From contig NIVC01003091.1 in NCBI GenBank assembly GCA_002269645.1, positions 1-64,000 on the forward strand: DNA of 64,000 bases, written 5' to 3'. The notes under the pieces were generated by a model that was given only the letters and a program-made list of their open reading frames with translations, did not search any database and was not told the origin of the DNA. The position numbers and the translations under genes are program-made. The stretch comes from Macrostomum lignano. Taxonomy: Eukaryota. Shown piece after piece: positions 5,912 through 47,498 of the stretch (position 1 is its first letter; every line of letters begins with the position of its first letter).

Positions 5912-6510
5912 CATTAAAGTTGTAGTTGCAATTCCCGCGGTAACGCCATAGAAATGCCGTGGAATCGAATTAAAAAAAGTTTTCTAAAAATAGAAAAGTA
6001 AGTTTCACAAAGACACTATATGCCTCCAAAGGTTGAAATTTAACATTATCTTTAATATCAACTTAGTTAGACTAAAATTTCGAACCTTTGAAATGAGACA
6101 CATAAGTCTGCTCTTTAATACTTAAGTGTCTGTATCATTGATAATATTTATAAGAAATAAACTAGTCGATATAGTCAAGGTGGTCATAATGTTTCAATAA
6201 CTTAAGTCACAATAACACAAAATTGAAGCATTTAAGTGGCACTAACTGTTAATTCGAGGGGCCAATTTCAAATCTTCAACCGTATGACCCGAGAAAACTA
6301 ATTCAGTACTCGTGCTGTACTATAAAATAAGCCTAACAAGACGTCCCAAGATCAAGTTTGCGACTCGGGTATTGAAAATTGATTAAAGGGGGGATAAATA
6401 ACGTTTATATTAACAAATGGCCTCTTAAAAATAATTTCAGACTCGGTTCAGACGCGATCAGTGCTAGTAATCCGATAACACGTTACACGATTCGCTACCG
6501 ACAGATTTTA

Positions 6511-8472
6511 ATGGCTAATAACAGGTATAGATTTGTTAGATTGAATGCCTGGCAAGCTACATATCAGTCGTCCTCTTCATCGGAACCGGATCAAAGGCTT
6601 GAACGCATCGATCAAACTTTTCCGGCAAGTGACGTTCCATGCGCATCAACCAGATTTCAATGCGGTCAAAATTCTGCGAGAACCTCGCGTAACACTGACG
6701 CCACAGAATTTCAACTATTATTTAATCAATTACTAGCAATTGCAACTGACGGATTGTCCAGGCAGAGGGTCTTGCACTCTGACACTCAGCCCGAACAGTT
6801 AAAGTCTTTTAGTTCTCGATCACAGACTGGCAAGTGCAAGAAGTTGCGCTACTACAAAGCAGAAGCACATCTGACGGCAGAGTTTCGCCTGTGCCGCAGA
6901 CTCTGGACTTCCGCAATCAGCGATGGGACACGAGTGGAATGCCGGCCTCGATTCCCCAACACCTGTGGACATGAACGAGAAGAGAACAGGTGGCAGTCTT
7001 TCCATCTGCCAGATGCCAGCTTTACAGCGGCTCACCTGGTGTCAGTGACGGATCTGGCTGCTGACGGATTCTTCTACCTCCAGGAGACGGACAGAGTCAA
7101 GTGTGCATTCTGCAAGGGTGTGCTCAAGGGCTGGAAGGCTGGCGAACAGGTCCGAGAGGCTCACAGACGCCACTTCTCCACCTGTCCGTTTGTGCTATTC
7201 GTCGAGGTCGGCAACGTGCCTCGAGAGCACAGGGAGCCGGAAGGAGCCTCGAGGTCAGCAAAGCTGGTCGAGGCAGTGCAGTGCAGTGATCAGATCATAG
7301 ATGAAGCCGTAGTGATGGTGAACGGAGACTGGAGCATGAAGCTGGTCGCTGAGCTTCCACCGATTGAGGCCGCTGGGCTGAAAGAGTGGGCGCTGGCGAC
7401 ACGAGGACTTTGTAGTCCAACCTCTGCTGGTGCAGTACGCGTTGTTGATGACGAGCTGGTCGCAGTCGACCTGATAAAGCATCCTCAGCTACCAGTGTCG
7501 AGCGAGGTAGCGAGATCTGCGTGCTCCGAGAGAGCGCTCAGGGAACTGTCTGCTCTCCAGCACAGTCTTGAAAGTGAGCCATCGAGTGTGACTGCCAAAC
7601 ACGCAGATTTCGAGAGCTACCAAACGAGGTCGCAGTCTCTGCACTCGGCTTTCGTTCAGCAGCCAGTGTACTTGCTTGCAAAGGCGGGCTTCTTCTACTC
7701 GAAAGCCGAGAGAGCGACCTGCTGCTTCAGCTGTGGACTTCGCGTTAACGACTGGAGCTGCAGCGATGATGTGTGGATTGAGCACGCTAGATGGTCGCCT
7801 CGCTGTCCTCATGTGTTGTTGGAACGAGGCAGCGACTTTGTGCGGACAGTGCACCGACTGTCACCTCCCGTGCAGCACCCGACTTGTGCTGCCTCAGCTC
7901 GGCGTCGCACTGCACTGGTGCAGTCGGGCTCAACTGTATCAGCTAGTTTTGCGACTGTCGACGAGTCCGTTGCCCCTACTGCAGTCCGCAGCAGTCGCGT
8001 AGACCAGTCTCTCGCAGTCACACCTGGAGTCGAGTTCAGAGTCGAGGCCAAAGACATCAATGCCAGAGCCGACCTGCCCGTTTTGAGACTGCTCACTCAG
8101 CTCGGATTTTCTGCTCTGCAAGTGAAACTGTTCACAGAGCTGCATCTCAGACAGCGAGGCGATGACTTTGCAACATCGGAGCTGTTCCTCGACTTCATGC
8201 TCTCCGAGAGCCGCCGCATGCGCAAGCAGTCGCAGGATCCGGAGGCGTTCTTCGAGAGCAGGATGTCTCAGATTCGGGAGTCACTGAACCAACAGCCGAG
8301 ACACCGAGACACAATCGACTGGAAGACGTGCAAGGTGTGCATGGACAATGAGGTGAACGTCATGCTTCTGGACTGTGGTCATTTAAACATTTGCTCTCCT
8401 TGTGCCAACTCTGTGACCAGCTGCCCCATTTGCACAGCCTACATACGCGGTACTGTGTTGATCAAGATTTAG
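6511..8472 (+). CDS. Inhibitor of apoptosis protein: BIR-BIR-UBA-RING (~653 aa from first ATG)
   Basis: Two BIRs with exact C-x2-C-x16-H-x6-C spacing (CAFC...HRRHFSTC ~6970-7200; CFSC...HARWSPRC ~7600-7815). IAP-type UBA-like segment (LPVLRLLTQLGFSALQVK...GDDFATSELFLDFML). C-terminal RING CKVC...CGH..C..C......CPIC. True start uncertain because the track start is TTG. Confidence 0.93.
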   Translation: MANNRYRFVRLNAWQATYQSSSSSEPDQRLERIDQTFPASDVPCASTRFQCGQNSARTSRNTDATEFQLLFNQLLAIATDGLSRQRVLHSDTQPEQLKSFSSRSQTGKCKKLRYYKAEAHLTAEFRLCRRLWTSAISDGTRVECRPRFPNTCGHEREENRWQSFHLPDASFTAAHLVSVTDLAADGFFYLQETDRVKCAFCKGVLKGWKAGEQVREAHRRHFSTCPFVLFVEVGNVPREHREPEGASRSAKLVEAVQCSDQIIDEAVVMVNGDWSMKLVAELPPIEAAGLKEWALATRGLCSPTSAGAVRVVDDELVAVDLIKHPQLPVSSEVARSACSERALRELSALQHSLESEPSSVTAKHADFESYQTRSQSLHSAFVQQPVYLLAKAGFFYSKAERATCCFSCGLRVNDWSCSDDVWIEHARWSPRCPHVLLERGSDFVRTVHRLSPPVQHPTCAASARRRTALVQSGSTVSASFATVDESVAPTAVRSSRVDQSLAVTPGVEFRVEAKDINARADLPVLRLLTQLGFSALQVKLFTELHLRQRGDDFATSELFLDFMLSESRRMRKQSQDPEAFFESRMSQIRESLNQQPRHRDTIDWKTCKVCMDNEVNVMLLDCGHLNICSPCANSVTSCPICTAYIRGTVLIKI

Positions 8473-9444
8473 AAAAAGTAATTACTTTATACGAGCGTAT
8501 GACAATTTTTTATAGAGAATTTTTAGATAGTGCTGCAAGCTCATAGTTTATTTGTTTTTTAATAATGAAATACGAGACGTATTTATATAGCTATCATAAA
8601 TACGCATTACGTGTATATATGCGATGTCGGGTCGAGCTGCTTCCGTTGGACTCAGTGTAGCTCTGATACCGCAATATACCCTTAATTATTAAATTTAACA
8701 CCAGTTTTGATACTCGTAATTAGTTCGTTTTTTCAAAACACTAAGATAAACACGAATACGTGTATGAATTTCATCAGCTTGTGTTATTGACACTTTCGCC
8801 TTGATCTTGCAAGTGCATTGTATTGCATTCCCAGTGCGTCGTTTTCAGTATCTGTTTTTTACACATATTGATGCTCATCTATTTTTATCGCGTATGAAGA
8901 TATTTTTATCGAATTTAATAAATACATTTTTGTTAATGATCTAGTGCCTGACTTGTCTACTTGCCTATACAACCATTTAAATTTGATATAAATTGCAATT
9001 ATAGTAGTCCTTTCATTCTTTGAGATGTCTTCAGCCCCGTTCTGAGTATAAGCCACAAAATTGGTTTCACTACATGGCGTTGTGATGGCGTCAGTTTTAT
9101 TCAAAACTAGAAGGGTAAGCATATCGCATACTATATTAAATGTTTAATACTTCTTTTCACTGTAGTTCTCTTTTGCAAGTTTGTCTAACCGCAAAGCAGC
9201 GTACATGTCAAACAAATTCAAGCTGAATTCATCCGGCGCATATTAATCCTTTAGTTTACACATACTCCATGCGCGGTCGACCGAAAGCATCTAAAATTGT
9301 ACCTCGGGGTGGCAAAATTTAGTCACATTTGGCTGCACGAACAGCATCAAGGCCAGTGCAATGCTTGCAGTTAGTATAAAGTCAATCATGAAATAAACTG
9401 ACACAAATTGCCACTTGAAAAGCTACCAGAAGAAGCAGCGAATC

Positions 9445-11022
9445 ATGAATTCGGAAACCTCTTCTGACACTGAGCTGTGCGTCATCTGCGGCGAACCGGC
9501 TCTAGGCTTGGGTCCGTTCTCTCGCTGCCAACTGTGCGATCATCACCTCAAAATTGATTTAGCGGACGCCTACAAGCTGCAACAGTCTGTTGCTGATGAA
9601 CTCGACGCCTACTCGCAAGATGTCGCTAATGACTTGGCGGTGGAATCTGACGAACTTGAAAAACACCTGCTGGAGGTTCAGCTGACGCTCGCCTCTGTAC
9701 AGCGAGACGTGCAAGAGTACTGTACCCGATTGGCGGAGCAGTATCGGAAGCGCCTTGAGGCTGTTCACGTTTGCCAGCGGAACCTCGAGGATGTCTGCAG
9801 CTACACCGAGGAGGTGGCCGCAGCGGAGAAGGCGGACAGCATTGCCGAGGTGGTTCAGCTGGCCGAATCCATGCAGCTGTCGCTTCCAGATTTGAAGTCG
9901 GACTTTGAAGTTGCGAAGCGACTGCGTTCGAAGGCCGACGGCGCCGAGCTGCAGTTGCGACGCCTTCGGCAGCTCAAGCGACTGGTTGGCAACGCGCTAG
10001 CTGGCGCCGAGTTGATAGACGTTGCGACGGACACTTCGAGTGACTCTGAATCCGCAGTGGTGCCACTGAGAAAAAACTATTATCCTACCACAGATTCAAA
10101 GAGGCATGAGATTAATAAATCGACTGGTTCGATTATAATTACTCATATAGTGGAGCCAGACGGCTGGGTGCACTGGCTGGACGTGTGCAGCGACACCAGC
10201 GGATTCGTTGCTAACCGTTCAGGTCGCATTGTACCCGCCGAGTCAGCTGATTTTGGTAGTGAAGCTCTGTCCCAACAGTGTGTGTTTGCAGTCCTGTCTG
10301 ACAAAGAGTATTTGTTTGTCTTTTCGATGCATAGTTCGCGGTGTTTCCGATGCTATTGTCCGATTAATTGGAGAAAGCTTGTCTGGGGTCTGCACTGCGA
10401 CCGTCAGCAGTTGTTCATCGCTCAGCCAGATGTAGTGACTGTAGCAGACCTGAGCGGTCGGATTCGTTTTCAAATTAAGACAGACGTGAACAACTTTGGA
10501 GACGTCTGGGGCATCGGCGGCAACGCAGCCTTCGTGTTTGTATCCAGCGGCAACAAGATTGCTGCATTCGACAAGTTGCGATTCGAATTCCAGTTCATCA
10601 TTACGCTGAGGGAATTCCCCGACGCAGACTTGTACAACATGACATGCCTGCATGACTGCATTCTTGTGGCTGACAAGCATCACAACATGGTGCACCGAGT
10701 GTCCATTGAAAACAGACAGCTCGTGACATCCTTTCCGATTAAGGGTGCTAGCGGCATGGCTCAGTTTACTTATCCGTACGATGTGGTCGTCGACAGCAGA
10801 GGCCGCCTGTTCGTCAGCGAATTCCGCAGTCACTCAGTGCGAGTGGTGGACGCTGAAAGCGGCTCACTGCTGCAGACCCTAGGAGTGCCGGGCGAGAGCG
10901 GCAGCGGAGACGGCAAATTCTGCTGTCCATGCGGTCTAGCGGTGCTGACAGGAGGCACGCGCGACCAGCTGATGGTAGCTGATCGCAATAATAAGCGACT
11001 TCTAGTATTCAACATCGGGTGA
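9445..11022 (+). CDS. TRIM-NHL-like protein: Zn-binding N-terminus, coiled coil, NHL beta-propeller (525 aa), no RING seen
   Basis: CVIC-x12-CQLCDHH; long heptad region; NHL repeats FTYPYDVVVDSRGRLFVSEFRSHSVRVVD and FCCPCGLAV...LMVADRNNKRLLVF. Confidence 0.8.
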   Translation: MNSETSSDTELCVICGEPALGLGPFSRCQLCDHHLKIDLADAYKLQQSVADELDAYSQDVANDLAVESDELEKHLLEVQLTLASVQRDVQEYCTRLAEQYRKRLEAVHVCQRNLEDVCSYTEEVAAAEKADSIAEVVQLAESMQLSLPDLKSDFEVAKRLRSKADGAELQLRRLRQLKRLVGNALAGAELIDVATDTSSDSESAVVPLRKNYYPTTDSKRHEINKSTGSIIITHIVEPDGWVHWLDVCSDTSGFVANRSGRIVPAESADFGSEALSQQCVFAVLSDKEYLFVFSMHSSRCFRCYCPINWRKLVWGLHCDRQQLFIAQPDVVTVADLSGRIRFQIKTDVNNFGDVWGIGGNAAFVFVSSGNKIAAFDKLRFEFQFIITLREFPDADLYNMTCLHDCILVADKHHNMVHRVSIENRQLVTSFPIKGASGMAQFTYPYDVVVDSRGRLFVSEFRSHSVRVVDAESGSLLQTLGVPGESGSGDGKFCCPCGLAVLTGGTRDQLMVADRNNKRLLVFNIG

Positions 11023-11808: not shown

Positions 11809-12809
11809 AACCGCACAAAAGTAAAAAAATCAGCCAAAGTGCCAATTGTTTATTATAGCTAGCTACATGTAGATAAACATGACCGTTAGTAAACAGGGAT
11901 TTGTCTCGGTAAGTAAAAACGGGGGAGACCATCGATCCAGTCAGATATATTAGCCAATAATTGAGCATAATTGAGCATTGAGTTTTAACTTTACAATAAT
12001 AAATATAGCTCGCATAGCCGTAGCTAAATATAAGACGAATACAATTTTTACAGTAAATAGACCACAACACATTCGATGGAATTAACAACAGAAATACGCA
12101 TCTATAGCAATCAGTGAATTTTTTCAATCAACGATTTAAACGACTTTAAGATATTTTAAGGCATTGACATAATTCATCGACTTTAGACAAAATTTTGTTA
12201 CAACTCGAAAATGAGGCTATATAAGGGGACGTTATCGAAAACCGAAATTATCATGCTAGCTAATTAGTAACAACTAGAAAATTTGAAAACAGTGTGAAAT
12301 TTGTAAAAATCTGAAAAGATTGAAAGTAAAAACAAGGAATTCACATTAAATAAAAAATAGCTAGCTAATCAAAATGTGCTAGCAATCCCGAAGGATATCC
12401 CAATGAAAGACCCTCTGTTAGGGAGAAACAAATTAATTTTAATTAGGAAGTTTTCAGTCCAAGGGACTGATGTGGTCGCCACACACCCTCACTAACCCAA
12501 GCTGTTGCTGGCACCCATTTTACAATTGAATTATAAATATCTTTACAGTACTTGTGGGGTCCCAGTTGCTGATTAACAATGAATTTACATAGCGAATTGC
12601 GTAAAACGCCATATTGCAAGCCTGAAAATCTGGCCACTGGACAAGATTTTTTATTTTAAACGTTTCTGGTGGGCAGTTGTGCGTTAAGCCTAAGCTACAT
12701 TTTTTTGTTTTTTTCAGGCTAAAATGTCAATATAATGTGGCAGTTAAACTCATGGACAACTACAATGCTCTTAAAAAGACGCTGCACACTCCTATAATCA
12801 ATAGCTAGA

Positions 12810-13695
12810 CTAGTCAATTGACTGGTATCGAAAAGAATCCTTAAACCAGACGTCACCTCTCAGTTGGTTAATCTCAGAGGGCAAGTTAAATATTGGTTCG
12901 AATTCCGGACCGTAGGCAAAAAACGGACGCCTGCCCAGCTCGTGTCTGACCATATTTAGCATGGCGCACAGATGGCTCCTTTCGTAGTTCCTTCTGATCA
13001 CATTGCACAGGGTTTGAATGTACGGGCTGCCTTTATCTGTGATCCGGATTGCCTTATCACCCTTGGTGACAGCGTACGCGATGAGAAAGTCCATTTTGCT
13101 TGAACTGACCCTGCCGTATTGGGAGCTACGGAGTAGCTGCACAGAACTTTGACTGCCGGAGGAACTCCTTGAGCCTTCGATTATTCGACATCCCTGGATA
13201 AAGAACAGCTTCGGCTTATTCTGGAGCGATCTGCAGTCGTAGAACGGGCTTATGACGTCATCCAGCTCGACATAGTTGCCATCTGAGCCCAACACTTTAT
13301 CGTATTTGCCGTGCGACATGATAAAGGCCACAAAGCAGTCAAATTTTGTGTGACGATCGCTGGTGGCGAGTTTCCGAACCAGAGCCAGAAGTTCGTTGGC
13401 GTTATTGTCTCTGTGCACCTGTACTTCAAAATTTAGCGTCTCTCTGAACAGGCTCTCCAGACGATTAACATCCTGCTGCGAGCCAGTGCGAGTTTGAGAG
13501 TCGTCGACAAACTTCTCGTTGTTGATAATGAGGCAGATCCCGCGAGGCTTGCTGCGCATCGTGTACTGATAGCCGCGTATCGGTGGCACCACACTTGAGT
13601 TCTGGCTCGAATAGTCCGGTTCGAATAGTTCAAAACGGCCTGAATGAGTACCTCCGAAATCGAAATCAAGCCTGCGTCCTCTGCGCGCTGGTCTA
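12810..13695 (-). CDS. Caspase domain exon (peptidase C14A, p20+p10)
   Basis: Y.M...PRGICLIINN, RTGSQQD, DCFVAFIMSHG (His codon 13313-13311), KPKLFFIQGCR (Cys codon 13190-13188), DFLIAYA, GSPYIQTLC. The frame is open but has no ATG back to the acceptor at 13696. Confidence 0.93.
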
Positions 13696-16600
13696 CTGGA
13701 GTAGGTAGTAGAAGTTTATTAAGCAATAGTAAACGACTTTAAAAGCCTCATTTCTATACGAGCTAGGGCCATTACCTTCGTTCAGCATAGAAAACACCAT
13801 GCATTAATTAAAGATTTCCACATGTCAACTATCAAAACTTCTGCACAAACACAACTCTGCTTAGCAGTCTTCCATCCTTAGAAGGCTCAAGTTTACTAGT
13901 GTTGTACTACACTCAATGGCACGGTCACAATAATTTTTCAACTTATTAATTTTGAAGACACATTTTAAAGTCCAAACCTTGTTGGAGCTGCATGGGCTGC
14001 CCAGGTACGACGCTTCTGGCTATCGAGCTGCAGCAGCACCTCAGTTGCGGCTGTCCGATTTGCCCGCATAGCAAGTTCCATTGCGTCGCCTTGGGAGCTT
14101 CTGTGGTAGATACTGGCCCCGTAGTTAGCCAGCAGTTTCAGCATGTCCGCATGGCCCTTGACGGCCGCTAGGGTAAACGCAGTGTTGCGGTTTTTTCTAG
14201 AGCTTGTCTCCAGCTCTAAATTGGCGTTGCGTTTAATCAACAGTTCGGCAAGCTCTTGAAGATTCTCCTGGGCGCAAAAGTGCAAAGCGCTAAATCCATC
14301 TGCCTCCTGGTTGTTGACGCTGGCCCTTCTATCCAGCAGAAGTATGGCGATAGCCCGACGATTCAACCAGGCGGCTCGAATCAACGGAGTCCGGCTGTCG
14401 GAGCTCTTGGCGTTGATGTCAATGGATGTCTGGTCCAGTAGGATCTTAGCGACTCGGCGGCTGTCCTGCTGCACCGCGATGTGCAACGCCGTGACGCCCA
14501 GATCCTGCTGCGCGACGTTGGGATCCGCGCCTCGATCCAGCAGCAGCCTGCAGGTGGCCTCGTCATCGTTCCAGGTGGCCGCCATCAGGACGGTCCAGCC
14601 CGGGTCCTGCCTAATCCGCTCGTTGATGCGTCGCTGTAGGGCGCCGCCGCTGGACTCGAGCAAGTAGCGCACCTTTCTCGTATTGCCGTCCATTGCAGCT
14701 TTGAAAACCTTCGATATGGTCAGCTCGTCGGTGTTTTGCGTCGATTTTGACCTGTTTGAAATAGATTCGAGTAAATGGTGGTTTTTTGGGATAAGATGGG
14801 TATTTCAGCATCTTGGTCAAGGTCTTTGTACAGTAGTATATAAAGTCTTTTCATTTCAGCAGGCTCTAGTTGGTGGTTCAAAATATTTAAGTTCTATTTT
14901 TTAAACGGGGTCGCTTCACAAGCTCGAAATTTGACAACCTCGAAAATTTTAGCAGCCGACTTCAAAAGCTCGAAATTTCACAACCTCGAAACCAGTTACT
15001 TTCATAAGCTCGAAATTTCACAAGCTCGAAATTTCACAACCTCGAAACCATTTTAGCAGCTTGTGAAATTGCTTTCACAAGCTCAAAACAAAACGAAACA
15101 CAAGCTTCACAAGGTTCTATGATTAAAACTACGGTCTATATGACTAAGCAATAAGGTAGGGTTAAAACTGGGTTCTATGGTAAAACTATGGTCTATGATT
15201 AAAACTAGGGTCTATGGTTAAAACTAGGGTCTATGATTAAAACTAGGTTCTATGGTAAAACTATGGTCTATGATTAAAACTAGGGTCTATGGTTAAAACT
15301 AGGGTCTATGATTAAAACTAGGGTCTATGGTAAAACTATGGTCTATGATTAAAACTAGGTTCTATGGTAAAACTATGGTCTATGATTAAAACTAGGGTCT
15401 ATGGTTAAAACTAGGGTCTATGATTAAAACTTGGGTCTATGGTAAAACTATGTTCTATGGTTAAAGCTAGAGTCTATGGTTAAAACTAGCCAGAGTCAGA
15501 GCTGAACCATTGCAACTAACAACTCCACCGCGCTAGCCTGTATACAGTCTCACATGAGCTCCAACACGACGTTAACCGCGTCTAACTGACGTGCCCGTTT
15601 GGCCTCGTCGCAGATCTGCGGCAGCCATTCGTTGCCGGCCCATTGAGCGTCCAACTGCAGAAGCCGTCTTAGCATTGGCCTCAGGACGTCGAGATGACCG
15701 CGGACAGCTGCGAGCTTGACCGGGCAGAGCGGACTGCCGTTGCGGCCGCCGCCGCCGCTGTTCATCAACTTGTTGAAGCCTGCCCGGCTGACAAGCAACT
15801 TGACCAACGGCCTTGCCGAGTCGAAATCTGCGCAGAAATGAAGCGGCGTCGAACCCCAGGCGTCTCTTATGGACAGCTTGGCGCCGGCGTGCAGCAGCTG
15901 GCTGACGCAGGCCTCGCTCCCGGCTTGGACTGCCGCGTGCAGGGCGGTCGTCTGGCTGGAATTCGTCGACCGAAGATTGACGTGCAAACTGGCGTTACTG
16001 CTGCGATCTCTTCTGATTGCTTCTAGAAGCAGTTTTAGCGCTTCCGGTTTATCCAATCCAGCTGCAAGCATCAGCGGTGTCTGACCCGTTGTCCGGTCCA
16101 TCGCGATCGCCTGATTGACGCCTTCGCCATCGTTCAGCAGGATGTTTCGAACTCGGTCGAGCCTGTCGCTTCGGATCGCTTTGATGAGGCTGAGTTGCTT
16201 GGATCGCTTTTGCCTATTTGTGGCGGTAAAAGGTGTAAATGAGGTCGTGCTGCTTGTTTTTAGATTTAAGTTTTTACACTTCCTAGTGAACTCCACCAGG
16301 GCCTTTTGCCCCTTCCGTATTCTTTTCATCAGGAGGCTCCTTGATGATTGACTCACCTCCCGCCAACAACTCTCCAGCTCTTCAACAGGCTGAGCAGTTC
16401 AGGCGAAGCCGGCACGCCTGCCATTTTCACTTGGTCCAAAGCTGTGCAACCCTCGCTATTTACCAGATTTGGATCAGCGCCGCTCGCGTGCAGCAGTCGC
16501 AGCATCTCAACGTGACCATTCAGAGCAGCTAAAGCAAACGCTGTGCTACTCTTGAACTCTGGCCTGGCTGTCCGATTGACCAGTTCATGTGGCGCTTTAG

Positions 16601-17219
16601 CCAGAATGCGCTTAGCAATCTCGCGTCTGTCCAGCTGGGCGCAAAGGTGCAACGCGGTGAAGCCGCTCTTTGAGGCCAGGTCAAGCCTGGCGCCACGATC
16701 GATGAGCAGGCAAGCCAGCTGGACGCTGTTCTCAAACACCGACTTCATCAGAGCGGTGAATCCTTGCTGGCTACTCTGCTGGTTCAACTGGATGTTCCTC
16801 TGGTCCAGCAGCAGTTTTGCTAGTTCGATGTGACCAAAATCGACGCAGATCATCAATGCGGTGACGTCATTCTTAGCCAACAAGTTCACATTGGCGCCAG
16901 CGTTCAACAGTAGTTTAGCGACGCTAAATAAATTCTGCCTGGCGCAGATGTGCAACGCGCCGAGCCCCGAGCTGTCGCGATGGTCCAGCGGAGACTTCAG
17001 TTCAGTCAGCAGCCGGCAGATGTTTACATTTTCGCCATTGGTTGAAGCCGCGGCAGCCATCAGTAGGCTCCTGTTGCGATCATTTTTGTTGATCCAGCCG
17101 GGTGACAAGCCCTCGCTAAGGTAGCCTCGAACTCTACTATAATCACCTTTTCCACAGGCTTCGTAAAGTTTGTAGTAGAGCCGTTCATTAGGTGCTTTGG
17201 ATGCGGATGCAGCTGCCAT
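12810..17219 (-). CDS. Ankyrin-repeat caspase, four exons (17219-16357, 16213-15554, 14751-13978, 13695-12810), predicted 1060 aa
   Basis: Three GT-AG introns, all phase 2 and all restoring frame: GGAG|gtgagt...caaatag|G, CAT|gtgaga...caaacag|G, AAG|gtttgg...ctccag|T. Exon lengths 863+660+774+886=3183 nt. Exons 1-3 hold ~20 ankyrin repeats and exon 4 a complete caspase domain. No transcript evidence available. Confidence 0.78.
13978..14751 (-). CDS. Ankyrin exon 3 (~7 repeats)
   Basis: GWTVLMAA, GVTALHIA, SRTPLIRAA, GFSALHFCA, NTAFTLAAVKGH. Symmetric phase 2-2 exon of 774 nt. Confidence 0.88.
14905..15490. repeat. Intronic repeats: TTCACAAGCTCGAAATT motifs (14905-15110) then a ~19-bp CTATGATTAAAACTAGGGT array (15115-15490)
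   Basis: Direct reading; inside intron 2 of the ankyrin-caspase gene. Confidence 0.85.
15554..16213 (-). CDS. Ankyrin exon 2 (~5 repeats)
   Basis: TGQTPLMLAA, QTTALHAAV, WGSTPLHFCA, CPVKLAAVRGH. Symmetric phase 2-2 exon of 660 nt. Confidence 0.85.
16357..17219 (-). CDS. Ankyrin exon 1 (~8 repeats)
   Basis: ATG at 17219; GLGALHICA, DVTALMIC, GFTALMKS, GFTALHLCA, STAFALAALNGH; consensus donor AG|GTGAGT at 16356. Confidence 0.88.
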
Positions 17220-17644: not shown

Positions 17645-17913
<269 letters not shown>

Positions 17914-18346
17914 TTAATACAATTAGCATTAAAGTCATTAATCATTTTAACTGATACTGGGGCACAAGATGCAAACTGTAAATGTCTTTTACGATCGTGA
18001 GTACAACCTTTAGCTATGTTTATTTTGAAAGGAACTTCTGCTTGTAAATTTTGATTAGATTAAAATTGTACTTTGAAATGTGTAGTTTATTCCTCGTGTT
18101 TTTAATTGATGTCAGCGCACTTCAATTTTGCTTTGCTATAATTTTTGTTTAACTTTTTCATACCATTATTAAAGTGATAACTTTTGGCCCTAATCTGGAT
18201 TCTGATGAAACTCAGCTGCAATAGCTATTGATCTACTAGTTGACTAGGCTAAATTTAGCTCATTAGCTCACAGTGAGCGCACTATAGCTTGCAATCATGA
18301 TGCTATATTTAGCTTTGGCCAAGTACTTTCTTTATTGTCAGCAGTC

Positions 18347-19793
18347 ATGAATATGAAGCAGGAACTCGAAAGCAGTTGCTACTCCAATGAGTTTTCTCTT
18401 GACGACGGCTTCATGCGACATCAGCGACGTCTGAACGGTCGACGTTCAGGTGGAACTATTCGACAAAGTTACAATTGTGGCTCGAGATGTCGAAACCGGA
18501 TGTTTGTCCTTGACGACCCGTCGTCTGGCAGAGCCAATTTGGCCAATCATGGGCACTTCGAAACAAGTGAGTTCTGCAGCCAAGGCTACTCAACTATTTT
18601 AGTTTCTTGTGTGATTATTTCTTAAAGACGAATTACTAAAGTACACATATAGTACAATAATAATAGTACACATGCTTGTAACATCTTCGAGAGGAGATGA
18701 GAGTGGATAACAGGAGAGGAGAGGAGAGGAGAGGAGACGAGAGGAGAGGAGACGAGAGGAGAGGAGAGGAGAGGAGAGGAGAGGAGACGAGAGGAGAGGA
18801 GAGGAGACGAGAGGAGAGGAGACGAGAGGAGAGGAGACGAGAGGAGAGGAGACGAGAGGAGAGGAGAGGAGAGGAGAGGAGAGGAGAGGAGAGGAGACGA
18901 GAGGAGAGGAGACGAGAGGAGAGGAGACGAGAGGAGAGGAGACGAGAGGAGAGGAGAGGAGACGAGACGAGAGGAGAGGAGACGAGAGGAGAGGAGAGGA
19001 GAGTAGAGGAAAGGAGAGGAGAGGAGAGGAGACGAGAGGAGAGGAGACGAGAGGAGAGGAGACGAGAGGAGAGGAAAGGAGAGGAGACGAGAGGAGAGGA
19101 AAGGAGAGGAGAGGAGAGGAGAGGAGACGAGAGGAGAGGAGAGGAGAGGAGACGAGAGGAGAGGAGACGAGAGGAGAGGAGAGGAGAGGAGAGGAGAGGA
19201 GACGAGAGGAGAGGAGACGAGAGGAGAGGAGACGAGAGGAGAGGAGAGGAGACGAGAGGAGAGGAGAGGAGAGGAGACGAGAGGAGAGGAGAGGAGACGA
19301 GAGGAGAGGCGAGGAGAGGAGAGGAGAGGAGAGGAGGAGAAGAGAAGAAAAGAGAGGATGGTGCTGGCGCTCATTTAAATAAAATAGCGTCTCTTCAACT
19401 CTAAACTACGCATCTGTCAACACGATTTCAGCTTCTCCACTCAGGTAGCCTACTCGTTGAACAAAAAAGACCGCTGGAACTTATGGTCTGACGTTGCAGG
19501 GTCTCGCGGAGAAGATGCGCTGGGAGGATTGAGGCTTCAGCTACTCGACTCGAGCTACAACCGACCCCGGAGGCACTAGCGCAAGGACTAACAACAGCTC
19601 TAATTCCTCAGCGACAGGTAAAAATCGTGAGCACAATCAGAGGCAGAACAGCCGATACAACCTGGAGCTGCAGTTGGATCCAGGTTGCCATCCGAAATTG
19701 CATTTGGACAAACTGATGCTGGACTGTGCGCATCGGTGGCGACTGCGAGATCGAAGTCGGTCAATGAAATATCGCGATTATTTTAGAACTTGA
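18347..19793 (+). pseudogene. Degenerate or truncated paralog of the N-terminal region of the RBR ligase at 28.3 kb
   Basis: After acceptor tttcag| (19431) it reads FSTQVAYSLNKKDRWN (cf. FTSDVTYSLNKNQRWN). After a frame change it reads RYNLELQLDPGC (cf. RFEMEMQFDMDGC), stop at 19791. A putative upstream exon 18347-18566 has a GTGAGT donor of mismatched phase. No RING domains follow. Confidence 0.5.
18712..19352 (+). repeat. (GAGGA)n/(GACGA) purine pentanucleotide array
   Basis: Direct reading. Confidence 0.97.
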
Positions 19794-19841
19794 GCTGCTA
19801 GCATTCTTTAGATCAGGGGTCGGCAAACTTTGAATCGCGAC

Positions 19842-22800
19842 GCCTCTCTTCTATCTCTTTTCTCTCTATCTTCTCTCTCTTCTCTCTCTTCTCTCTCTTC
19901 TCTCTCTTCTCTCTCTTCTCTCTCTTCTCTCTCTCTTCTCTCTCTTCTCTCTCTCTTCTCTCTCTTCTCTCTCTTCTCTCTCTTCTCTCTCCTCTATCTC
20001 ACTTCTCTCTCTCTTCTCTCTCTTCTCTCTCTTCTCTCTCCTCTATCTCCTCTATCTCACTTCTCTCTCTCTTCTCTCTCTTCTTTCTCTTCTCTCTCCT
20101 CTATCTCTCTCCTCTATCTCTCTTCTCTCTCCTCTATCTCTTATCTCTCTCTTCTCTCTCTTCTCTCTCCTCTATCTCCTCTATCTCACTTCTCTCTCTC
20201 TTCTCTCTCTTCTCTCTCTTCTCTCTCTTCTCTCTCTTCTCTCTCTCTTCTCTCTCTTCTCTCTCTCTCTTCTCTCTCTTCTCTCCCTTCTCTCTCTTCT
20301 ATCTCTTTTCTCTCTCTTCTCTCTCTTCTCTCTCTTCTCTCTCTTTTCTCTTCTCTCCCTTCTCTCTCCTCTATCTCACTTCTCTCTCTCTTCTCTCTCT
20401 TCACTCTCTTCTCTCTCTTCTCTCTCTTCTCTCTCTCTTCTCTCTTCTCTCCCTTCTCTCTCCTCTATCTCACTTCTCTCTCTCTTCTCTCTCATCTCTC
20501 TCTTCTCTCCCTTCTCTCTCTTCTCTTCTCTCTCTCTTCTCTCTCTTTTCTCTCTTTTCTCTCTTCTCTCTCTTCTCTCTCTTTTCTCTCTTTTCTCTCT
20601 TCTCTCTCTTCTCTCTCTCTCTTCTCTCTCTTCTCTCCCTTCTCTCTCTTCTCTCTCTTTTCTCTCTCTTCTCTCTCTTCTCTCTCTTCTCTCTCTCTTC
20701 TCTCTTCTCTCCCTTCTCTCTCCTCTATCTCACTTCTCTCTCTCTTCTCTCTCTTCTCTCTCTTCTCTCCCTTCTCTCTCTTCTCTTCTCTCTCTCTTCT
20801 CTCTCTTTTCTCTCTTCTCTCTCTTCTCTCTCTTTTCTCTCTTTTCTCTCTTCTCTCTCTTCTCTCTCTCTCTTCTCTCTCTTCTCTCCCTTCTCTCTCT
20901 TCTATCTCTTTTCTCTCTCTTCTCTCTCTTCTCTCTCTTCTCTCTCTCTTCTCTCTCTCTTCTCTCTTCTCTCCCTTCTCTCTCCTCTATCTCACTTCTC
21001 TCTCTCTTCTCTCTCTTCTCTCTCTTCTCTCCCTTCTCTCTCTTCTCTTCTCTCTCTCTTCTCTCTCTTCTCTCTCTTTTCTCTCTTCTCTCTCTTCTCT
21101 CTCTTTTCTCTCTTTTCTCTCTTCTCTCTCTTCTCTCTCTCTCTTCTCTCTCTTCTCTCCCTTCTCTCTCTTCTATCTCTTTTCTCTCTCTTCTCTCTCT
21201 TCTCTCTCTTCTCTCTCTCTTCTCTCTTCTCTCCCTTCTTTCTCCTCTATCTCACTTCTCTCTCTCTTCTCTCTCTTCTCTCTCCTCTATCTCACTTCTC
21301 TCTCTCTTCTCTCTTCTCTCCCTTCTCTCTCCTCTATCTCACTTCTCTCCCTCTTCTCTCTCTCTCTTCTCTCTCTTCTCTCTCTTCTCTCTCTTTTCTC
21401 TCTTTTCTCTCTTCTCTCTCTTCTCTCTCTTTTCTCTCTTTTCTCTCTTCTCTCTCTTCTCTCTCTTTTCTCTCTTTTATCTCTTCTCTCTCTTCTCTCT
21501 CTCTCTTCTCTCTCTTCTCTCCCTTCTCTCTCTTCTATCTCTTTTCTCTCTCTTCTCTCTCTTCTCTCTCTTCTCTCTCTCTTCTCTCTCTCTTCTCTCT
21601 TCTCTCCCTTCTCTCTCCTCTATCTCACTTCTCTCTCTCTTCTCTCTCTTCTCTCTCTTCTCTCCCTTCTCTCTCTTCTCTTCTCTCTCTCTTCTCTCTC
21701 TTCTCTCTCTTTTCTCTCTTTTCTCTCTTCTCTCTCTTCTCTCTCTCTCTTCTCTCTCTTCTCTCCCTTCTCTCTATTCTATCTCTTTTCTCTCTCTTCT
21801 CTCTCTTCTCTCTCTTCTCTCTCTCTTCTCTCTTCTCTCCCTTCTTCCTCCTCTATCTCACTTCTCTCTCTCTTCTCTCTCTTCTCTCTCCTCTATCTCA
21901 CTTCTCTCTCTCTTCTCTCTTCTCTCCCTTCTCTCTCCTCTATCTCACTTCTCTCCCTCTTCTCTCTCTCTCTTCTCTCTCTTCTCTCTCTTCTCTCTCC
22001 TCTCTCTTCTCTCTCTTCTCTCCCTTCTCTCTCTTCTATCTCTTTTCTCTCTCTTTTCTCTCTTCTCTCTCTTCTCTCTCTCTTCTCTCTTCTCTCCCTT
22101 CTCTCTCCTTTATCTCACTTCTCTCTCTCTTCTCTCTCTTCTCTCTCTTCTCTCTTCTCTCCCTTCTCTCTCCTTTATCTCACTTCTCTCTCTCTTCTCT
22201 CTCTTCTCTCTCTTCTCTCCCTTCTCTCTCTTCTCTTCTCTCTCTCTTCTCTCTCTTTTCTCTATTTTCTCTCTTCTCTCTCTTCTCTCTCTTCTCTCTC
22301 TCTCTCTTCTCTCTCTTCTCTCCCTTCTCTCTCTTCTATCTCTTTTCTCTCTCTTTTCTCTCTTCTCTCTCTTCTCTCTCTCTTCTCTCTTCTCTCCCTT
22401 CTCTCTCCTCTATCTCACTTCTCTCTCTCTTCTCTCTCTTCTCTCCCTTCTCTCTCTTCTATCTCACTTCTCTCTCTCTTCTCTCTCTTCTCTCTCTTCT
22501 CTCCCTTCTCTCTCTTCTCTTCTCTCTCTCTTCTCTCTCTTCTCTCTCTTTTCTCTCTTCTCTCTCTTCTCTCTCTTTTCTCTCTTTTCTCTCTTCTCTC
22601 TCTTCTCTCTCTCTCTTCTCTCTCTTCTCTCCCTTCTCTCTCTTCTATCTCTTTTCTCTCTCTTCTCTCTCTTCTCTCTCTTCTCTCTCTCTTCTCTCTT
22701 CTCTCCCTTCTTTCTCTTCTATCTCACTTCTCTCTCTCTTCTCTCTCTTCTCTCTCCTCTATCTCACTTCTCTCTCTCTTCTCTCTTCTCTCCTTTCTCT

Positions 22801-23071
22801 CTCCTCTATCTCACTTCTCTCCCTCTTCTCTCTCTCTCTCTTCTCTCTCTTCTCTCTCCTCTCTCTTCTCTCTCTTCTCTCTCTTCTCTCTCTTCTCTCT
22901 CCTTTCTCTCCTCTCTCTTCTCTCTCTTCTCTCTCTTCTTTCTCTCTTCTCTCTCTCTTCTCTCTCTTCTCTCCCTTCTCTCTCCTCTATCTCACTTCTC
23001 TCTCTCTCTTCTCTCTCTTCTCTCTCTTCTCTCTCTCTCTCTTCTCTCTCTTCTCTCTCTTCTCTCTCTTT
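19842..23071 (+). repeat. 3.2-kb polypyrimidine (TC/TTC) complex microsatellite
   Basis: Almost pure C/T with recurring CCTCTATCTCAC landmarks; source of the spurious 1094-aa S/L/F ORF. Confidence 0.97.
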
Positions 23072-23744
23072 TGTTAGTACAGACTGTACTTTAGCATATC
23101 AGTCTATCGATTGACCCGATTGTCTTTAACGCAACAAACGACCTTGATTTGCTTTGTCATATCCAGAGCTTAATTTCTAAGTTTTTGGTTTATAGATTTT
23201 ATAAATAGTTCTTATTTTTTTGTTATTGTCGTAGCCTGACTTTTTCTCCAGCATTTTTCTACTATTTTCATCTGATGTGCCGATAGAAATAAATGCGAGC
23301 GTATATATTAGAGAATTTTTTAATCTGATAATAATATTCAGAAACTGTAATATTTGTTTTGTGTTTAGATGTATATAAGGAAATATATTTTTCTCAAAAA
23401 TTAACAGTTTTAATTAAGAATTTGTAGACTAAAAACTGAAATTGTCTTAGATAAATAATTTTTTTTATTTCAGTCGATAACTAATACTCTTTATAGTAGA
23501 TAGAGAGTAATATGGGATAATTATCTTAGAAACGATAGTCCTTATCTAGGCATTTTAAAGCCATTAAAGAATAACTCATTATAAGTGACATGAAATTTAG
23601 ATATAGATAGGTAGCTTGTGAGAATTAAGCTGAAAAAATTGAAGCATTTAATGAATAATAAATTAAAATCAATACAATATTTTCACCACAGTGAACAATT
23701 CCCATTAATGAAGAAATTCACTGTCGATATCAAATATCTTTGTT

Positions 23745-24479: not shown

Positions 24480-27400
24480 TTAGAAGCTCATCTTCCTGCC
24501 TGTTGAACTGCTCAAAGCCTCAAGTTCGCTTTCAACCCTAGCAGTTCCAGCCGTTTTGCAGCGTCGGTACGCACCTATTGACGATTGAGCAGATTGTTCA
24601 ATCTGTCCTAGGGTCTCCAGCTGGATGCTTGACGTCGTCCCTTGCCGCTCGGCCTCAATATCGACCACCGTGCACAGGGTTGACGAATTCTCGGGTGCAT
24701 CCGAACCGGTCTTGGCGGTAAATGTTTTAGCCGACGTTTCCGTTGGCGGCAGGTGCAAATCCACCCAGCTGGCCTGGTTTCTGTCGCTGACTGTGGACCT
24801 CACCCGCAGGGTTCGCTTGCGTCGATCGCAAGCGATGAGGCGGCCCAGACGGCACAGTTTGTGCCAGAAGCCGTATCTGATTTTGTTGGCGCGTTGTACT
24901 CTGTGCAAAAAGTGCATGGTGGACTTGCTCTTGGCGACGCGATCGATAAAGCTGACTAGAACCGCGATGAGAAAGTTAAGAGTCAGTATAGCGAACATCA
25001 AGATGTAGACAAAGTGCAACACCTTGATCTCGGTCTTCTTGAACTCCATGGTCAGAGTGGAGTTGCCAAATCGTCGGGTGGTCGGGTCGAACAGGTTCAG
25101 CGAGGTGGTGAAGATCCGGTAGAACTCGCCAAGAAAGCTGGGCATGTCCATGCTGGCGAACTGGCCCATGTCGGCGCCCACCTGGTGCAAGATGCCGGCA
25201 GTCTGAGCCCAGAACAGATTGGCGAATATCACGATGCAGAAGATGTAGATTAGGCTAAGCTGCATGAAGCGCTCCAGCACTTGACGAAACATCATCACGG
25301 TTTCGCCAAACAATGGCGCACTCTCCATCATGTACAGAAACAGCAGGTTGACGCACAGGGCGCACATGTGCAAGAAGCAGCCGATGCCTTGAGAGATTGT
25401 GTCAAACTCTTGAGCGATGGTTTTCACGGATAGAATCGCTTCGCTCGATGTAAAATTGAGGCTAACTCGCTGAATAAGTGCGCAAGCGCTGAGCTGTACC
25501 AGCCCGAGTGAGCAGGAGTTGGTAAAACTGCTGTTGAAGTAGGTCGCCAGAAGCCAGTAGCAGATCCAGCAAAGCAGGCACACGATGAGCAGCAGATCGG
25601 TGCGCTGAGTGCGTCTCTCGTACAGATGGCGGTAGCGCACGCTGCGCCACTTCAGCTTGCAGTGGCTGATTGCGACGGATGCCAGCACGCGGAATGGGAA
25701 CAGCGCCGCTTTAACCAGAATCATCAGGGCGATGACTAAACCCACAATTTGCACCACCTTATGCCCGTCCGCTATGTCAATATAAAACGGCGTTGTCTCA
25801 TTGCAAAAGTTGTTGCGCATTTCAACTATCAGAGCGTCAAGCTTGCTGCTTTCGAGTCCCAGAACGTAGCGCAGCCTCTTCTCGACGTCCTCCTTCGCTA
25901 GCATGACGCCGGCGTGGATCGGCACCGTCACTGGCGGCCTGGCAACCGGGCTGCACTTCACCGCGGCCAGTGGGTCGGCTGCGGCAGCCGACTCGTGGAA
26001 GAAGCCGTACTGCATCGGCATGGGGATGTACAGCATGCACAAGCAGAGAATCCAGGGCAGCAGTTCGAAGGCTAAAACGATTTTAACGCTCCACGAGATG
26101 CCCATGCGCAGCAGGGCCGGCTGCTGCAGGAAGCCGGACTCCTGCAGGCGGGCGATCTGCTCTGGCGAGGTCAGCGAAGTCAGCAGAACCATTGGCGCTC
26201 GATGATACCTGTTGCGATGACTGCCAACGATGTACTCGTCCAACAGGTAGTTCTTAGTAACTAAGTTGCCATGCACGCTGGAGTGAACGTAGACACCCGG
26301 CAGTTCTAATAAGATCACCGCCAGCTCGTAGCACTCCAGGTAGATGGCTAATTCCAAACTGTTGAAGTCGAAGTCATCGGTTCGTCTGGCCGTTGCGCGG
26401 GTGACCGCCGCACCTCCGGACTCCAGGGCTGTCCGCAGGAACTCAGCGTAGGCGGCTGTGGGTTTCACCTGCCACATTTTTCAGATTGCGCAATTATTTT
26501 TCGAAGTAGTAGCTTTACAAGATTGCATCGCTATATCAAAAAGTTACGACTTTCCTACTCAAGTTTTACTTTTCCATGTTATGTGTACATATTCCTACTG
26601 AAAGTACGAGATAAAAGTCCAAAAATGTACTTTTGGGGAGATGGGAGATGGGAGGGGCGATTCTCTATGGGGGGAGATGGGAGGGGCGATTCTCTATGGG
26701 GGGGGAGATGGGAGGGGCGATTCTCTATGGTTGAGATTGGAGGGGTGATTCTCCATGGGGGGTCAATGGGGGAGATGGGAGGGGCGATTATCTCTATGGG
26801 GGGATGGGAGGGGCGATTCTATATGTGGATATGGGAGGGGCGATTCTCTATGGAGAGATGGGAGGGGCGATTCTCTATGGGGGGAGATGGGAGGGGCGAT
26901 TATCTCTATGGGGGGATGGGAGGGGCGATTCTATATGTGGATATGGGAGGGGCGATTCTCTATGGGGGGAGATGGGAGGGGCGATTCTCTATGGTTGAGA
27001 TTGGAGGGGTGATTCTCTATGGATTCTCTATGGGGAGATGGGAGGGGCGATTCTCTATGGGGGGAGATGGGAGGGGCGATTCTCTATGGGGGGAGATGGG
27101 AGGGGCGATTCTCTATGGGGAGATGGGAGGGGCGATTTTCTATGGGGGGAGATGGGAGGGGCGATTTCTATGTGGCAGATAGGAGGGGCGATTCTCTATG
27201 GGGAGATGGGAGGGGCGATTTCTATGTGGCAGATAGGAGGGGCGATTCTCTATGGGGAGATGGGAGGGGCGATTCTCTATGTGGCAGATAGGAGGGGCGA
27301 TTCTCTATGGGGAGATGGGAGGGGCGATTCTCTATGGGGGGATGGGAGGGGCGATTCTCTATGTGGGAGATGGGAGGGGCAATTCTCTATGTGGCAGATA

Positions 27401-41814: not shown

Positions 41815-43492
41815 TCAGCTTTGAGCGCACTGACTTTTAGGCCGATTATTAACCACATTGCCGTGACTGCCGCTAACACCTGACGACGCATTCAATGCTG
41901 TAGCAGACGATGACATCTGTGTCTGTTGCTGTCTTTTAGAAGCGGCTTTTGTTTTTGACACAACCGGCGAGGCCGAGCTCCGCCTCTGGCCGGGCACCGG
42001 AGCGGGAAAATTGGACGCCGCCGATACAACAGGCACTACTGGCTGATTATAACTATAAGGATTGTCAGTACTACTAACAGTAGTAGAAGCCGAACCAGAT
42101 ATTAGCGGAGCCTGCGGTCTGCGCAGATGATAGCCAGCATCGCTGGACAATATCAAATTGTCAGTAGTCAAATATGTTGGATCTAAATCAGCCGCAATGT
42201 TCCTGCTAGACTGATGATGCTGAGGTGCCGCTGCCGGAGGCTGGGCAAGCGCCTGCGGCTGTCTAGACGACATCAAAGGACTGTCGGCAAAATAGTAAGC
42301 AGACACGGGCCGCTGCGGTGGTTTCTGATGCTGAGGTCGACGAAGTGGCTGCTGCTGCTGCTGCTGCTGATAGTGAGTTACTCTGAAATAGAAAGCGAAA
42401 ATTTATAGTTCTATTAGGAGGGCACATCGTCCCGCATTCCCGTACCGTACACACGCTCACAGAGGGTGCACAGCGGCCCTGACTATCTAGCCGATTCGGG
42501 TCTCGGGTAACTTAGAGAGAAAAAAAGACCCAAACAAACCTGGATTGCAGCGGACGCTCCTCAATACCTGCTGCACCATTGACAGCCGGAACAGGGCCAG
42601 CTGCAGCCGCCGATGCTGTCACGGCCTGTCTCAACGATTGTCGAGAGTGAGCATAGCGCGACGGCGCCGCTGCCAACGCTAGCGGGTGTCCACCGCCGCC
42701 GTCGCCGCCTGCAGCAAACGGAGCGCTATTGGACGGATTGTCGTAGATTGGCGAGCCCGGAGCTACAACCGGCAGTCCAGCCTGACGCTGCTGGCCGCTG
42801 AGCAGATGAAACTCCTCATCAGCAGGGTTGCTGCGGTCTTCGTAGCCAGCCCGGCCAGTTTGCACCCAGGCATCGACGCTGCGCGATCTTCGTTGACGTT
42901 CGTCATTAGCATCCTCGTCTGCGTCTTCTTCCTCCTCCTCGCGTCTCCGTCGATGCCGTCGATGACGACGTCGACTACGCCGATGGCGTCGTTCGCTACG
43001 ACGCAGACGCCATCGACACTCGTCCAGTTCGGCGATGCACCTCGCCAAACTGGAATCGGCCAGCTCAGTCTCCGACATCACCTGGGCTAACTGAGCCTCA
43101 GCGTCCTGCATCCGTCTGGCCAGAGTGAAGTCTCCACCACCGCTGCCGACGCCTCCGTTGCCGCAGCGTCGACGTAGTCGATCGGCCTCTTCGGCTAATC
43201 GACTCAGGCGATCCTCTAGCTGACGACGCTGGCTAATCAGGGCAGCTTCGCGAGCTTCCAGCGAGTTGTCAGCGTCGTCGGTGACAGCCGGTTGGACGCC
43301 TCCTCGCTCATGATTGTCACCACCATGATCGTTGCCATCGTCTGCCCAGCGTCGGCCGAGCTGAGCAGCCAGATCGGCATCCTGGTCGCATAGCTCTCTG
43401 GTAGCCTGCACCTGGCGGAATCTGCCCAACTGCTGCTGTGTGATGGCCTGCAGTCGGATTCTCTGCTGCTGATGCTGTTGCTGATGCATCAT
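41815..43492 (-). CDS. Uncharacterised Gln-rich coiled-coil/low-complexity protein, exons 43492-42540 and 42382-41815 (~506 aa; may lack 5' exons)
   Basis: Phase-2 intron CCAG|gtttgt...tttcag|A joins two track ORFs in frame. Heptads EAREAALISQRRQLEDRLSRLAEEADRL and MQDAEAQLAQVMSE. Confidence 0.6.

Positions 43493-47455: not shown

Positions 47456-47498
<43 letters not shown>

Follow-up and report, generated by a model that had tools for sequence, protein, structure and literature searches.

A probable four-exon ankyrin caspase gene in the free-living flatworm Macrostomum lignano

Introduction

Caspases that carry ankyrin repeats ahead of the protease domain, the "ANK caspases", are a published architecture of parasitic flatworms (Krasovec et al. 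2024, Genome Biol Evol, PMC11463336); it was in Schistosoma that Lee et al. 2014, Trends Parasitol, first noticed them (as reported in PMC11463336). In the published phylogeny they form a maximally supported platyhelminth clade whose sister group is the DED caspases, and they have been suggested to be probable initiators whose activator is unidentified (PMC11463336). They were stated to be restricted to parasitic platyhelminths and absent from free-living species; Macrostomum lignano was reported with only a kinase-like-prodomain caspase, placed as the sister of the ANK clade, and further unexpected pro-domains were not reported in platyhelminths (PMC11463336). M. lignano is a free-living, early-branching rhabditophoran. 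We describe here a locus of this species that very probably encodes an ANK caspase. It lies on the minus strand at positions 12810-17219 of a 64-kb stretch (positions 1 to 64,000 of contig NIVC01003091.1, assembly GCA_002269645.1), which was analysed as a whole and is called the window below.

A preliminary description of the locus, made from its letters, had presented it as a hidden fusion of ankyrin repeats to a caspase and had raised the possibility of a new architecture. Neither point holds. A public UniProt model, A0A1I8I0Q1, already joins the four exons, and two GenBank paralogues share the domain order. Since ANK caspases have been published (PMC11463336), the architecture is already known and the gene is a new member, not a new type of protein. 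What looks unreported is an ANK caspase in a free-living flatworm, and at the level of architecture the M. lignano genes contradict the statement that such caspases are confined to parasites.

Results

Three phase-2 introns join four open reading frames

The locus contains four minus-strand open reading frames (ORFs; 16353-17219, 15550-16356, 13965-14693 and 12810-13592), three of them ankyrin-rich and one caspase-like. The preliminary description had joined them through three phase-2 introns, and we recovered the same structure: all three introns are GT..AG and phase 2, their acceptors are preceded by pyrimidine-rich stretches, and splicing yields a 3183-nt coding sequence of 1060 aa that ends at a TAG stop (12812-12810). 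The same junctions are found in A0A1I8I0Q1. Exon GC ranges from 0.50 to 0.60 as against 0.36-0.43 for the introns, and codon bias is positive solely in the coding frame of each exon, intron 1 being ambiguous.

Exon 1 (16357..17219, 863 nt) starts with the ATG at 17219-17217 and encodes a first ankyrin module (residues 1-287, 8 helix hairpins); its product is identical to residues 10-297 of A0A1I8I0Q1. Intron 1 (16214..16356, 143 nt, GC 0.43) has the donor GAG/GTGAGT and the acceptor CACAAATAG/G, ending in ATAG, and three alternative in-frame acceptors are also present for this donor. Exon 2 (15554..16213, 660 nt, symmetric 2-2 phase) encodes the second module (residues 289-507, 6 hairpins). 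It is followed by intron 2 (14752..15553, 802 nt, GC 0.36), with donor CAT/GTGAGA and acceptor TTTCAAACAG/G, ending in ACAG. Most of intron 2 is occupied by two tandem-repeat arrays, one at 14915-15047 (16-nt unit, about 9 copies) and the other at 15112-15489 (19/56/75-nt units, the 19-mer in about 20 copies). Exon 3 (13978..14751, 774 nt), also of symmetric 2-2 phase, encodes the third module (residues 509-765, 7 hairpins). Intron 3 (13696..13977, 282 nt, GC 0.36) has the donor AAG/GTTTGG and the acceptor CTACTCCAG/T, ending in CCAG; the branch-like CTTAAT and the pyrimidine run noted earlier at this acceptor are indeed present, the former at 13723-13718. The end of intron 3 also forms a tandem CAG/TAG acceptor (13693-13697) whose second AG lies 3 nt downstream; splicing to this downstream AG (13693) would shorten the protein by one residue without a change of frame.

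Exon 4 begins with an inter-domain linker (13545..13695, residues 766 to about 816) that has no in-frame ATG and ends in the conserved stretch NSSVVPPIRGYQY. The caspase domain (Peptidase_C14; 12933..13544, residues 817-1020) comes next, then a C-terminal tail with a conserved GDVWFKD motif and the TAG stop (12810..12932, residues 1021-1060). A poly(A) signal, AATAAA, is found at 12650..12655 on the same strand, about 155 nt past the stop. The caspase frame opens just 20 nt upstream of the exon 4 acceptor and its first ATG stands 7 residues ahead of strand beta-1. The 13 residues preceding this ATG (the NSSVVPPIRGYQY stretch) are identical in the paralogue: conserved coding sequence extends upstream of the first ATG of the caspase frame. 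Likewise, the first in-frame ATG of exon 3 (14693) falls within a conserved N-cap helix.

An open frame alone does not prove this splice model, since dozens of frame-compatible GT..AG pairs occur by chance; we counted 52, 38 and 19 others near the three boundaries. Internal features that speak for the proposed sites are the GC and codon-bias contrast, the tandem repeats in intron 2, and where the first ATGs of exons 3 and 4 lie. The proof has to come from independent gene models and from the paralogue, not from the frame. With this evidence, given below, we regard it as very probable that the locus is one four-exon protein-coding gene, with three phase-2 GT-AG introns, encoding an ANK caspase of 1060 aa.

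Independent gene models and paralogues

We ran an exhaustive HMMER search with exon 3 plus exon 4 as query against 1.84 billion representatives. The two top matches, both from Macrostomum lignano, align contiguously across the ankyrin-caspase junction where the model predicts it. Word-indexed searches with the caspase exon, or with a three-sequence profile, had returned neither the paralogues nor proteins combining Ank with C14; the exhaustive search found the paralogues.

The public model A0A1I8I0Q1 (UniProt/UniRef, 2049 aa) describes this same locus. From its Met, 1045 of the 1060 residues are identical to our spliced model and all three junctions are common. It then exits at an internal GT (12857) and jumps, GT..AG, to about 10980, so that its C-terminal ~1000 residues are the antisense of two neighbouring genes, an NHL gene (10979-9574) and an inhibitor-of-apoptosis (IAP) gene (8369-7164), while the GDVWFKD motif conserved in the paralogues is omitted. 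Because it reads antisense through these genes and skips the conserved tail, the second half is spurious: it is an annotation error in the public proteome, and the spliced model is the better one at the 3' end. The correct product has 1060 aa and ends at 12810.

The GenBank paralogues PAA92194.1 and PAA51086.1 (1067 aa each) have the same ankyrin-caspase architecture, with about 62% protein identity to this gene and 70-75% identity in exon nucleotides. On its own contig PAA92194.1 consists of exons of 866/630/777/931 nt separated by three phase-2 GT-AG introns; junction 2 occupies the identical alignment column in both genes, and junctions 1 and 3 each lie within 3-4 alignment columns of their counterparts, in gappy linker segments. 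GenBank BOX15_ models were built from RNA-seq and a de novo transcriptome, and their gene boundaries were cut with TBONE at experimentally observed spliced leader (SL) and poly(A) sites (PMC5730564), so the paralogue's single mRNA spanning ankyrin repeats and caspase is transcript-supported. The two paralogues sit on separate contigs (NIVC01000059.1 and NIVC01003507.1) with near-identical upstream sequence, in keeping with the large-scale duplication for which the DV1 line is known. M. lignano would carry at least two ANK-caspase genes, this locus and the PAA92194.1/PAA51086.1 pair, whose synonymous divergence (dS) is above 1.

Compared with the paralogue, the ratio of nonsynonymous to synonymous substitution rates (dN/dS) is 0.17 in exon 1, 0.19 in exon 2 and 0.13 in exon 3; these values indicate that all three ankyrin exons are under purifying selection. 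The ratio is 0.74 for the 34-residue linker (residues 767-800). For the caspase domain the proportions of nonsynonymous and synonymous differences are 0.29 (pN) and 0.74 (pS, saturated).

The ankyrin prodomain

The domain search that the preliminary description had called for, ankyrin repeats together with Peptidase_C14, returned both on the full protein: Ank/Ank_2 at 1.7e-74, with multiple ankyrin families matching, and Peptidase_C14 at 2.4e-44. The ankyrin array occupies the place usual for CARD or DED, as had been proposed. The earlier figure of about 20 repeats was fair. A strict hidden Markov model of the canonical repeat scores 13, and the AlphaFold model has 21 helix hairpins, distributed 8+6+7 over exons 1 to 3. 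This full-length model was computed from a 4-sequence alignment, too shallow to judge ankyrin-caspase contacts, with a per-residue confidence (pLDDT) of 60-85 in the ankyrin part. Each of the three modules has its own N- and C-cap, and they are mutually 29-33% identical, that is, paralogous; with exons 2 and 3 phase-symmetric, this fits growth of the array by tandem exon duplication. The prodomain totals about 800 residues, about 765 of ankyrin repeats plus the linker, a long prodomain of the kind that marks initiator caspases. The linker is predicted by AlphaFold to be disordered at 758-819 and contains the sequence FEPD(793), a possible site of prodomain cleavage.

The caspase domain

Exon 4 alone matches Pfam Peptidase_C14 (PF00656) at 1.9e-45, with 155.8 bits against a cut-off of 21.4, and the best sequence matches in the PDB are caspase-7, -8 and -3 (E around 1e-27). 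An AlphaFold2 model of the domain, built on a 119-sequence alignment, reached a pLDDT of 88.2 and a predicted template-modelling score (pTM) of 0.87; in Foldseek it matched caspase-7/-3/-8 with E = 2e-24 and target-normalised TM scores of 0.85-0.90. The predicted structure thus has the p20 and p10 parts of the caspase/hemoglobinase fold. The catalytic dyad and the Arg/Gln/Arg residues of an Asp-specific S1 pocket, which the preliminary description had pointed out, are all found, on the minus strand: His894 (in SHG, 13313-13311) and Cys935 (in QGCR, 13190-13188) align with the caspase-7 dyad in near-invariant columns of the family, and Arg835 (13490-13488), Gln933 (13196-13194) and Arg983 (13046-13044) are conserved. 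In the 119-sequence alignment all invariant or near-invariant family residues are kept save the Gly of the active-site pentapeptide, which is therefore not the canonical QACXG, a motif typical of caspases and not defining them. The inter-subunit linker (937-967) contains no Asp, making auto-processing there unlikely; this would fit an enzyme of initiator type that works as a dimer without being cleaved. From the conserved residues and the modelled fold, the protein is probably an active Asp-specific protease.

In a rough neighbour-joining tree without usable support values, which we used qualitatively only, the two M. lignano ANK proteins share a long branch of their own, which lies outside the executioner clade and outside that of caspase-9. 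Their neighbours are cnidarian and DED-type caspases, and the executioner clade includes a short M. lignano caspase.

The surrounding window

The window is eukaryotic in character, with microsatellites and short introns, and Rfam gave no match anywhere in its 64 kb. An IAP-type ORF (6379-8472, plus strand, 697 aa), which carries two BIR domains and a RING at its C-terminus, runs convergently towards the caspase gene at about 4.3 kb from the caspase stop, and between the two lies an NHL ORF (9415-11022, plus strand, 535 aa) with an NHL repeat and a Cys-rich, TRIM-NHL-like N-terminus. A functional linkage between caspase and IAP was considered and rejected: neither IAP nor NHL occurs within 10 kb of the paralogous locus on NIVC01000059.1, and, not being conserved there, the adjacency may be coincidental. 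An RBR-type E3 ligase gene (28927-31864, plus strand; RING and two IBR matches) is split by a 95-nt phase-2 intron (30967-31061) that has the same GTGAGT donor as intron 1, overlapping a TGA stop, and this likeness speaks for the splice sites proposed here.

Elsewhere on the minus strand we noted a 665-aa multi-pass membrane ORF with no Pfam match (24480-26477), a charged low-complexity ORF (42512-43492) and several exons of a nucleoporin (45733-48766, weak Nucleoporin_C match). Very long microsatellite and low-complexity arrays, for example (CTGT)n, occupy 17647-17914, 18622-23114, 26523-27664 and 53739-56316; on both strands they give rise to spurious ORFs, the longest of 1094 aa, and they cause extreme GC and AT skew.

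Discussion

The explanation that we favour, and consider likely as a whole, is a single ANK-caspase gene whose product would work by an initiator mechanism. Several observations weigh against it. The pentapeptide reads QGCRI, with Ile replacing a Gly whose conservation in the 119-sequence alignment is at least 90% (Pro in the paralogue, QACRP); the tree gives the protein a placement without usable support, and its identity to all caspase classes is flat, at 33-36%. The sole public model of the locus is chimeric at its 3' end, the exact 1060-aa product is absent from the public protein collection by exact look-up, and transcript support comes from the paralogues and not from reads at the exact locus. 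Intron 1 is open in the frame of exon 2, with an ATG at 16329 (MKRIRKGQ...) and a mildly positive codon bias, so that the gene may have an internal alternative start; a transcript beginning there could give a product shortened at its N-terminus, with two ankyrin modules ahead of the caspase.

Some of these points would suit a gene that is as described while its product is not an activating protease, being either a caspase-like protein of weak catalysis or regulatory function (a cFLIP-like decoy or scaffold) or one whose ankyrin repeats serve localisation or substrate targeting. The substituted pentapeptide and the missing Asp in the inter-subunit linker agree with this, and ankyrin arrays commonly tether proteins to membranes or the cytoskeleton. 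However, the Cys, the His and the three S1 residues are kept both here and in a long-diverged paralogue, whereas decoys of the cFLIP type have lost the catalytic Cys; the caspase fold is predicted at high confidence, and initiator caspases are active without linker cleavage. We thus judge a non-activating product unlikely, although it is the strongest of the competitors.

The fusion might also be an artefact of gene prediction here, or this copy might be a duplicate that is silent or decaying; no single mRNA would then come from it, and only in the paralogues would the architecture be real. This would accommodate a public model that is wrong in its second half, the absence of the exact product, by exact look-up, even from the transcript-based GenBank set, the atypical pentapeptide and inter-subunit linker, and the extensive duplicated sequence in M. 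lignano DV1 (PMC5730564). Yet the frame runs uninterrupted through 1060 codons and its splice sites are canonical, every domain-coding exon has been under purifying selection since the divergence from the paralogue, with dS above 1, and the catalytic and structural invariants are all kept. Moreover, transcripts overlapping repeats were filtered from the GenBank set (PMC5730564), which, with intron 2 being repeat-rich, could explain the absence. An artefact or a decaying copy is accordingly improbable.

The least probable alternative is an operon, in which each of the four ORFs would be a cistron of its own, co-transcribed with the others and resolved by SL trans-splicing, the terminal ATG of the SL serving as start. 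About 30% of M. lignano genes are trans-spliced and about 15% are in operons, with spacers typically near 100 nt, and the 35-nt SL ends in ATG (PMC8629364); every ORF here stops 0-4 codons from the proposed donor, and the spacers of 143, 802 and 282 nt fall in the operon range. But a donor-adjacent stop follows automatically from a phase-2 GTGAG or GTAAG donor; the stops that end ORFs 1 and 2 are indeed TGA within the phase-2 GTGAG. An SL-supplied ATG would be out of frame at all three acceptors, opening ORFs of 55, 47 and 1 codons, and likewise in the paralogue (36, 2 and 6 codons), and in exons 3 and 4 conserved coding sequence precedes the first in-frame ATG. No AATAAA or ATTAAA occurs within 400 nt past the stop of exon 1 or exon 2; intron 3 does contain an AATAAA (13720), which follows the stop of exon 3 by 245 nt and precedes the acceptor of exon 4 by 25 nt. 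TBONE, cutting at observed SL and poly(A) sites, kept the paralogue as one 1067-aa mRNA. On the frame of the SL ATG and the poly(A) signals, we rejected the operon as highly improbable.

Returning to the single ANK-caspase gene, we tentatively propose, at rather less than even odds, that its product acts by recruitment. The protein would be an apical, initiator-type caspase in which the ankyrin solenoid takes the place of the CARD or DED death fold as a protein-binding surface. The array would gather zymogens on a partner, and the caspase domains would then be activated by proximity-induced dimerisation. Cleavage of the inter-subunit linker would probably be dispensable for this, given that the linker has no Asp, and the prodomain might be released at FEPD(793). 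The earlier idea of a sensor coupled straight to a protease, with no need of death-fold adaptors, is a conjecture in common with the literature, where the similar view of a probable initiator is put more cautiously.

These genes bear on the published evolutionary account, which ties the architecture to parasitism and which a bona fide M. lignano ANK caspase would correct. Were they orthologous to the neodermatan clade, the ankyrin prodomain would be older than parasitism and triclads would have lost it, and the published tie of ANK caspases to a parasitic lifestyle would be overturned. If they are not orthologous, flatworm caspases gained ankyrin prodomains at least twice. We see the chances as about equal that ANK caspases are no innovation of parasitic flatworms, with at least two anciently diverged genes in M. 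lignano and a prodomain of ~21 repeats built by exon duplication. In three homology searches no neodermatan protein combining Ank with C14 came up. The best flatworm match to the M. lignano profile, the cestode protein P0277, was considered as an ANK caspase of the published type and rejected, since it lacks an Ank domain and belongs to a CASP3/7-like family. In Sparganum proliferum (AP044638.1, 1-4774 and 10001-15803) an Ank_2 gene lies upstream, on the same strand, of this CASP3/7-like caspase; the similarity of that gene's ankyrin part to the M. lignano protein is weak and non-significant (E = 0.008).

The matter has practical sides as well. In parasitic flatworms, the CARD type apart, ANK caspases are the sole caspases with a long prodomain, and they have been put forward as candidate drug targets specific to the clade. 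M. lignano can be made transgenic and is amenable to RNA interference; if its protein is a bona fide ANK caspase, it would offer an experimentally tractable animal in which the ankyrin prodomain's partner could be sought.

Among known systems, two groups have a caspase domain and ankyrin repeats in one protein. The ANK caspases of platyhelminths, like the protein described here, combine an ankyrin pro-domain with p20/p10 in one polypeptide, lack CARD and DED, belong to Platyhelminthes and are proposed initiators; the published clade is stated to be parasitic only, whereas the present gene and its paralogues belong to a macrostomorph that is free-living. The caspase-STAND-ankyrin proteins of Haliotis (XP_048241358.1), Batillaria (KAK7463151.1) and Cloeon (XP_065346539.1) also join a caspase to a long ankyrin array; unlike the flatworm protein they carry a STAND/NACHT nucleoside triphosphatase, set between these domains or beside them, and their caspase, only about 35% identical, is often N-terminal as in an NLR-like layout. 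They are unverified gene predictions. The matches of this kind (P0129, P0152, P0239, P0194) comprise abalone caspase-nSTAND3-ANK, mud snail nSTAND3-ANK-ZU5-caspase and mayfly caspase-NACHT-ANK models, and this NLR-like layout of molluscs and mayfly comes nearer than the flatworm gene to the idea of a sensor joined to a protease. Metagenome-derived proteins (P0015, P0052, P0059, P0035) join a caspase domain of about 35-38% identity to MORN or TPR repeats.

The remaining systems resemble it in part. DED caspases (caspase-8/10) have a long interaction prodomain followed by the caspase and are among the best sequence and profile matches; here, in contrast, there is no death fold, an ankyrin solenoid of ~800 residues stands in place of two 80-residue DEDs, identity is only about 33-34%, and no FADD-type partner is implied. 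The executioner caspases-3/-7 give the best structural and PDB sequence matches, with identical catalytic and S1 residues, and differ in their short prodomains and linker Asp sites, neither of which is found in this protein. Caiap, a fish inflammasome adaptor made of a CARD and ankyrin repeats, likewise places ankyrin repeats in a caspase-activating context; as presented in PMC5662874, it is an adaptor of its own that carries a CARD and lacks a protease domain, whereas in M. lignano the ankyrin repeats are fused to the protease.

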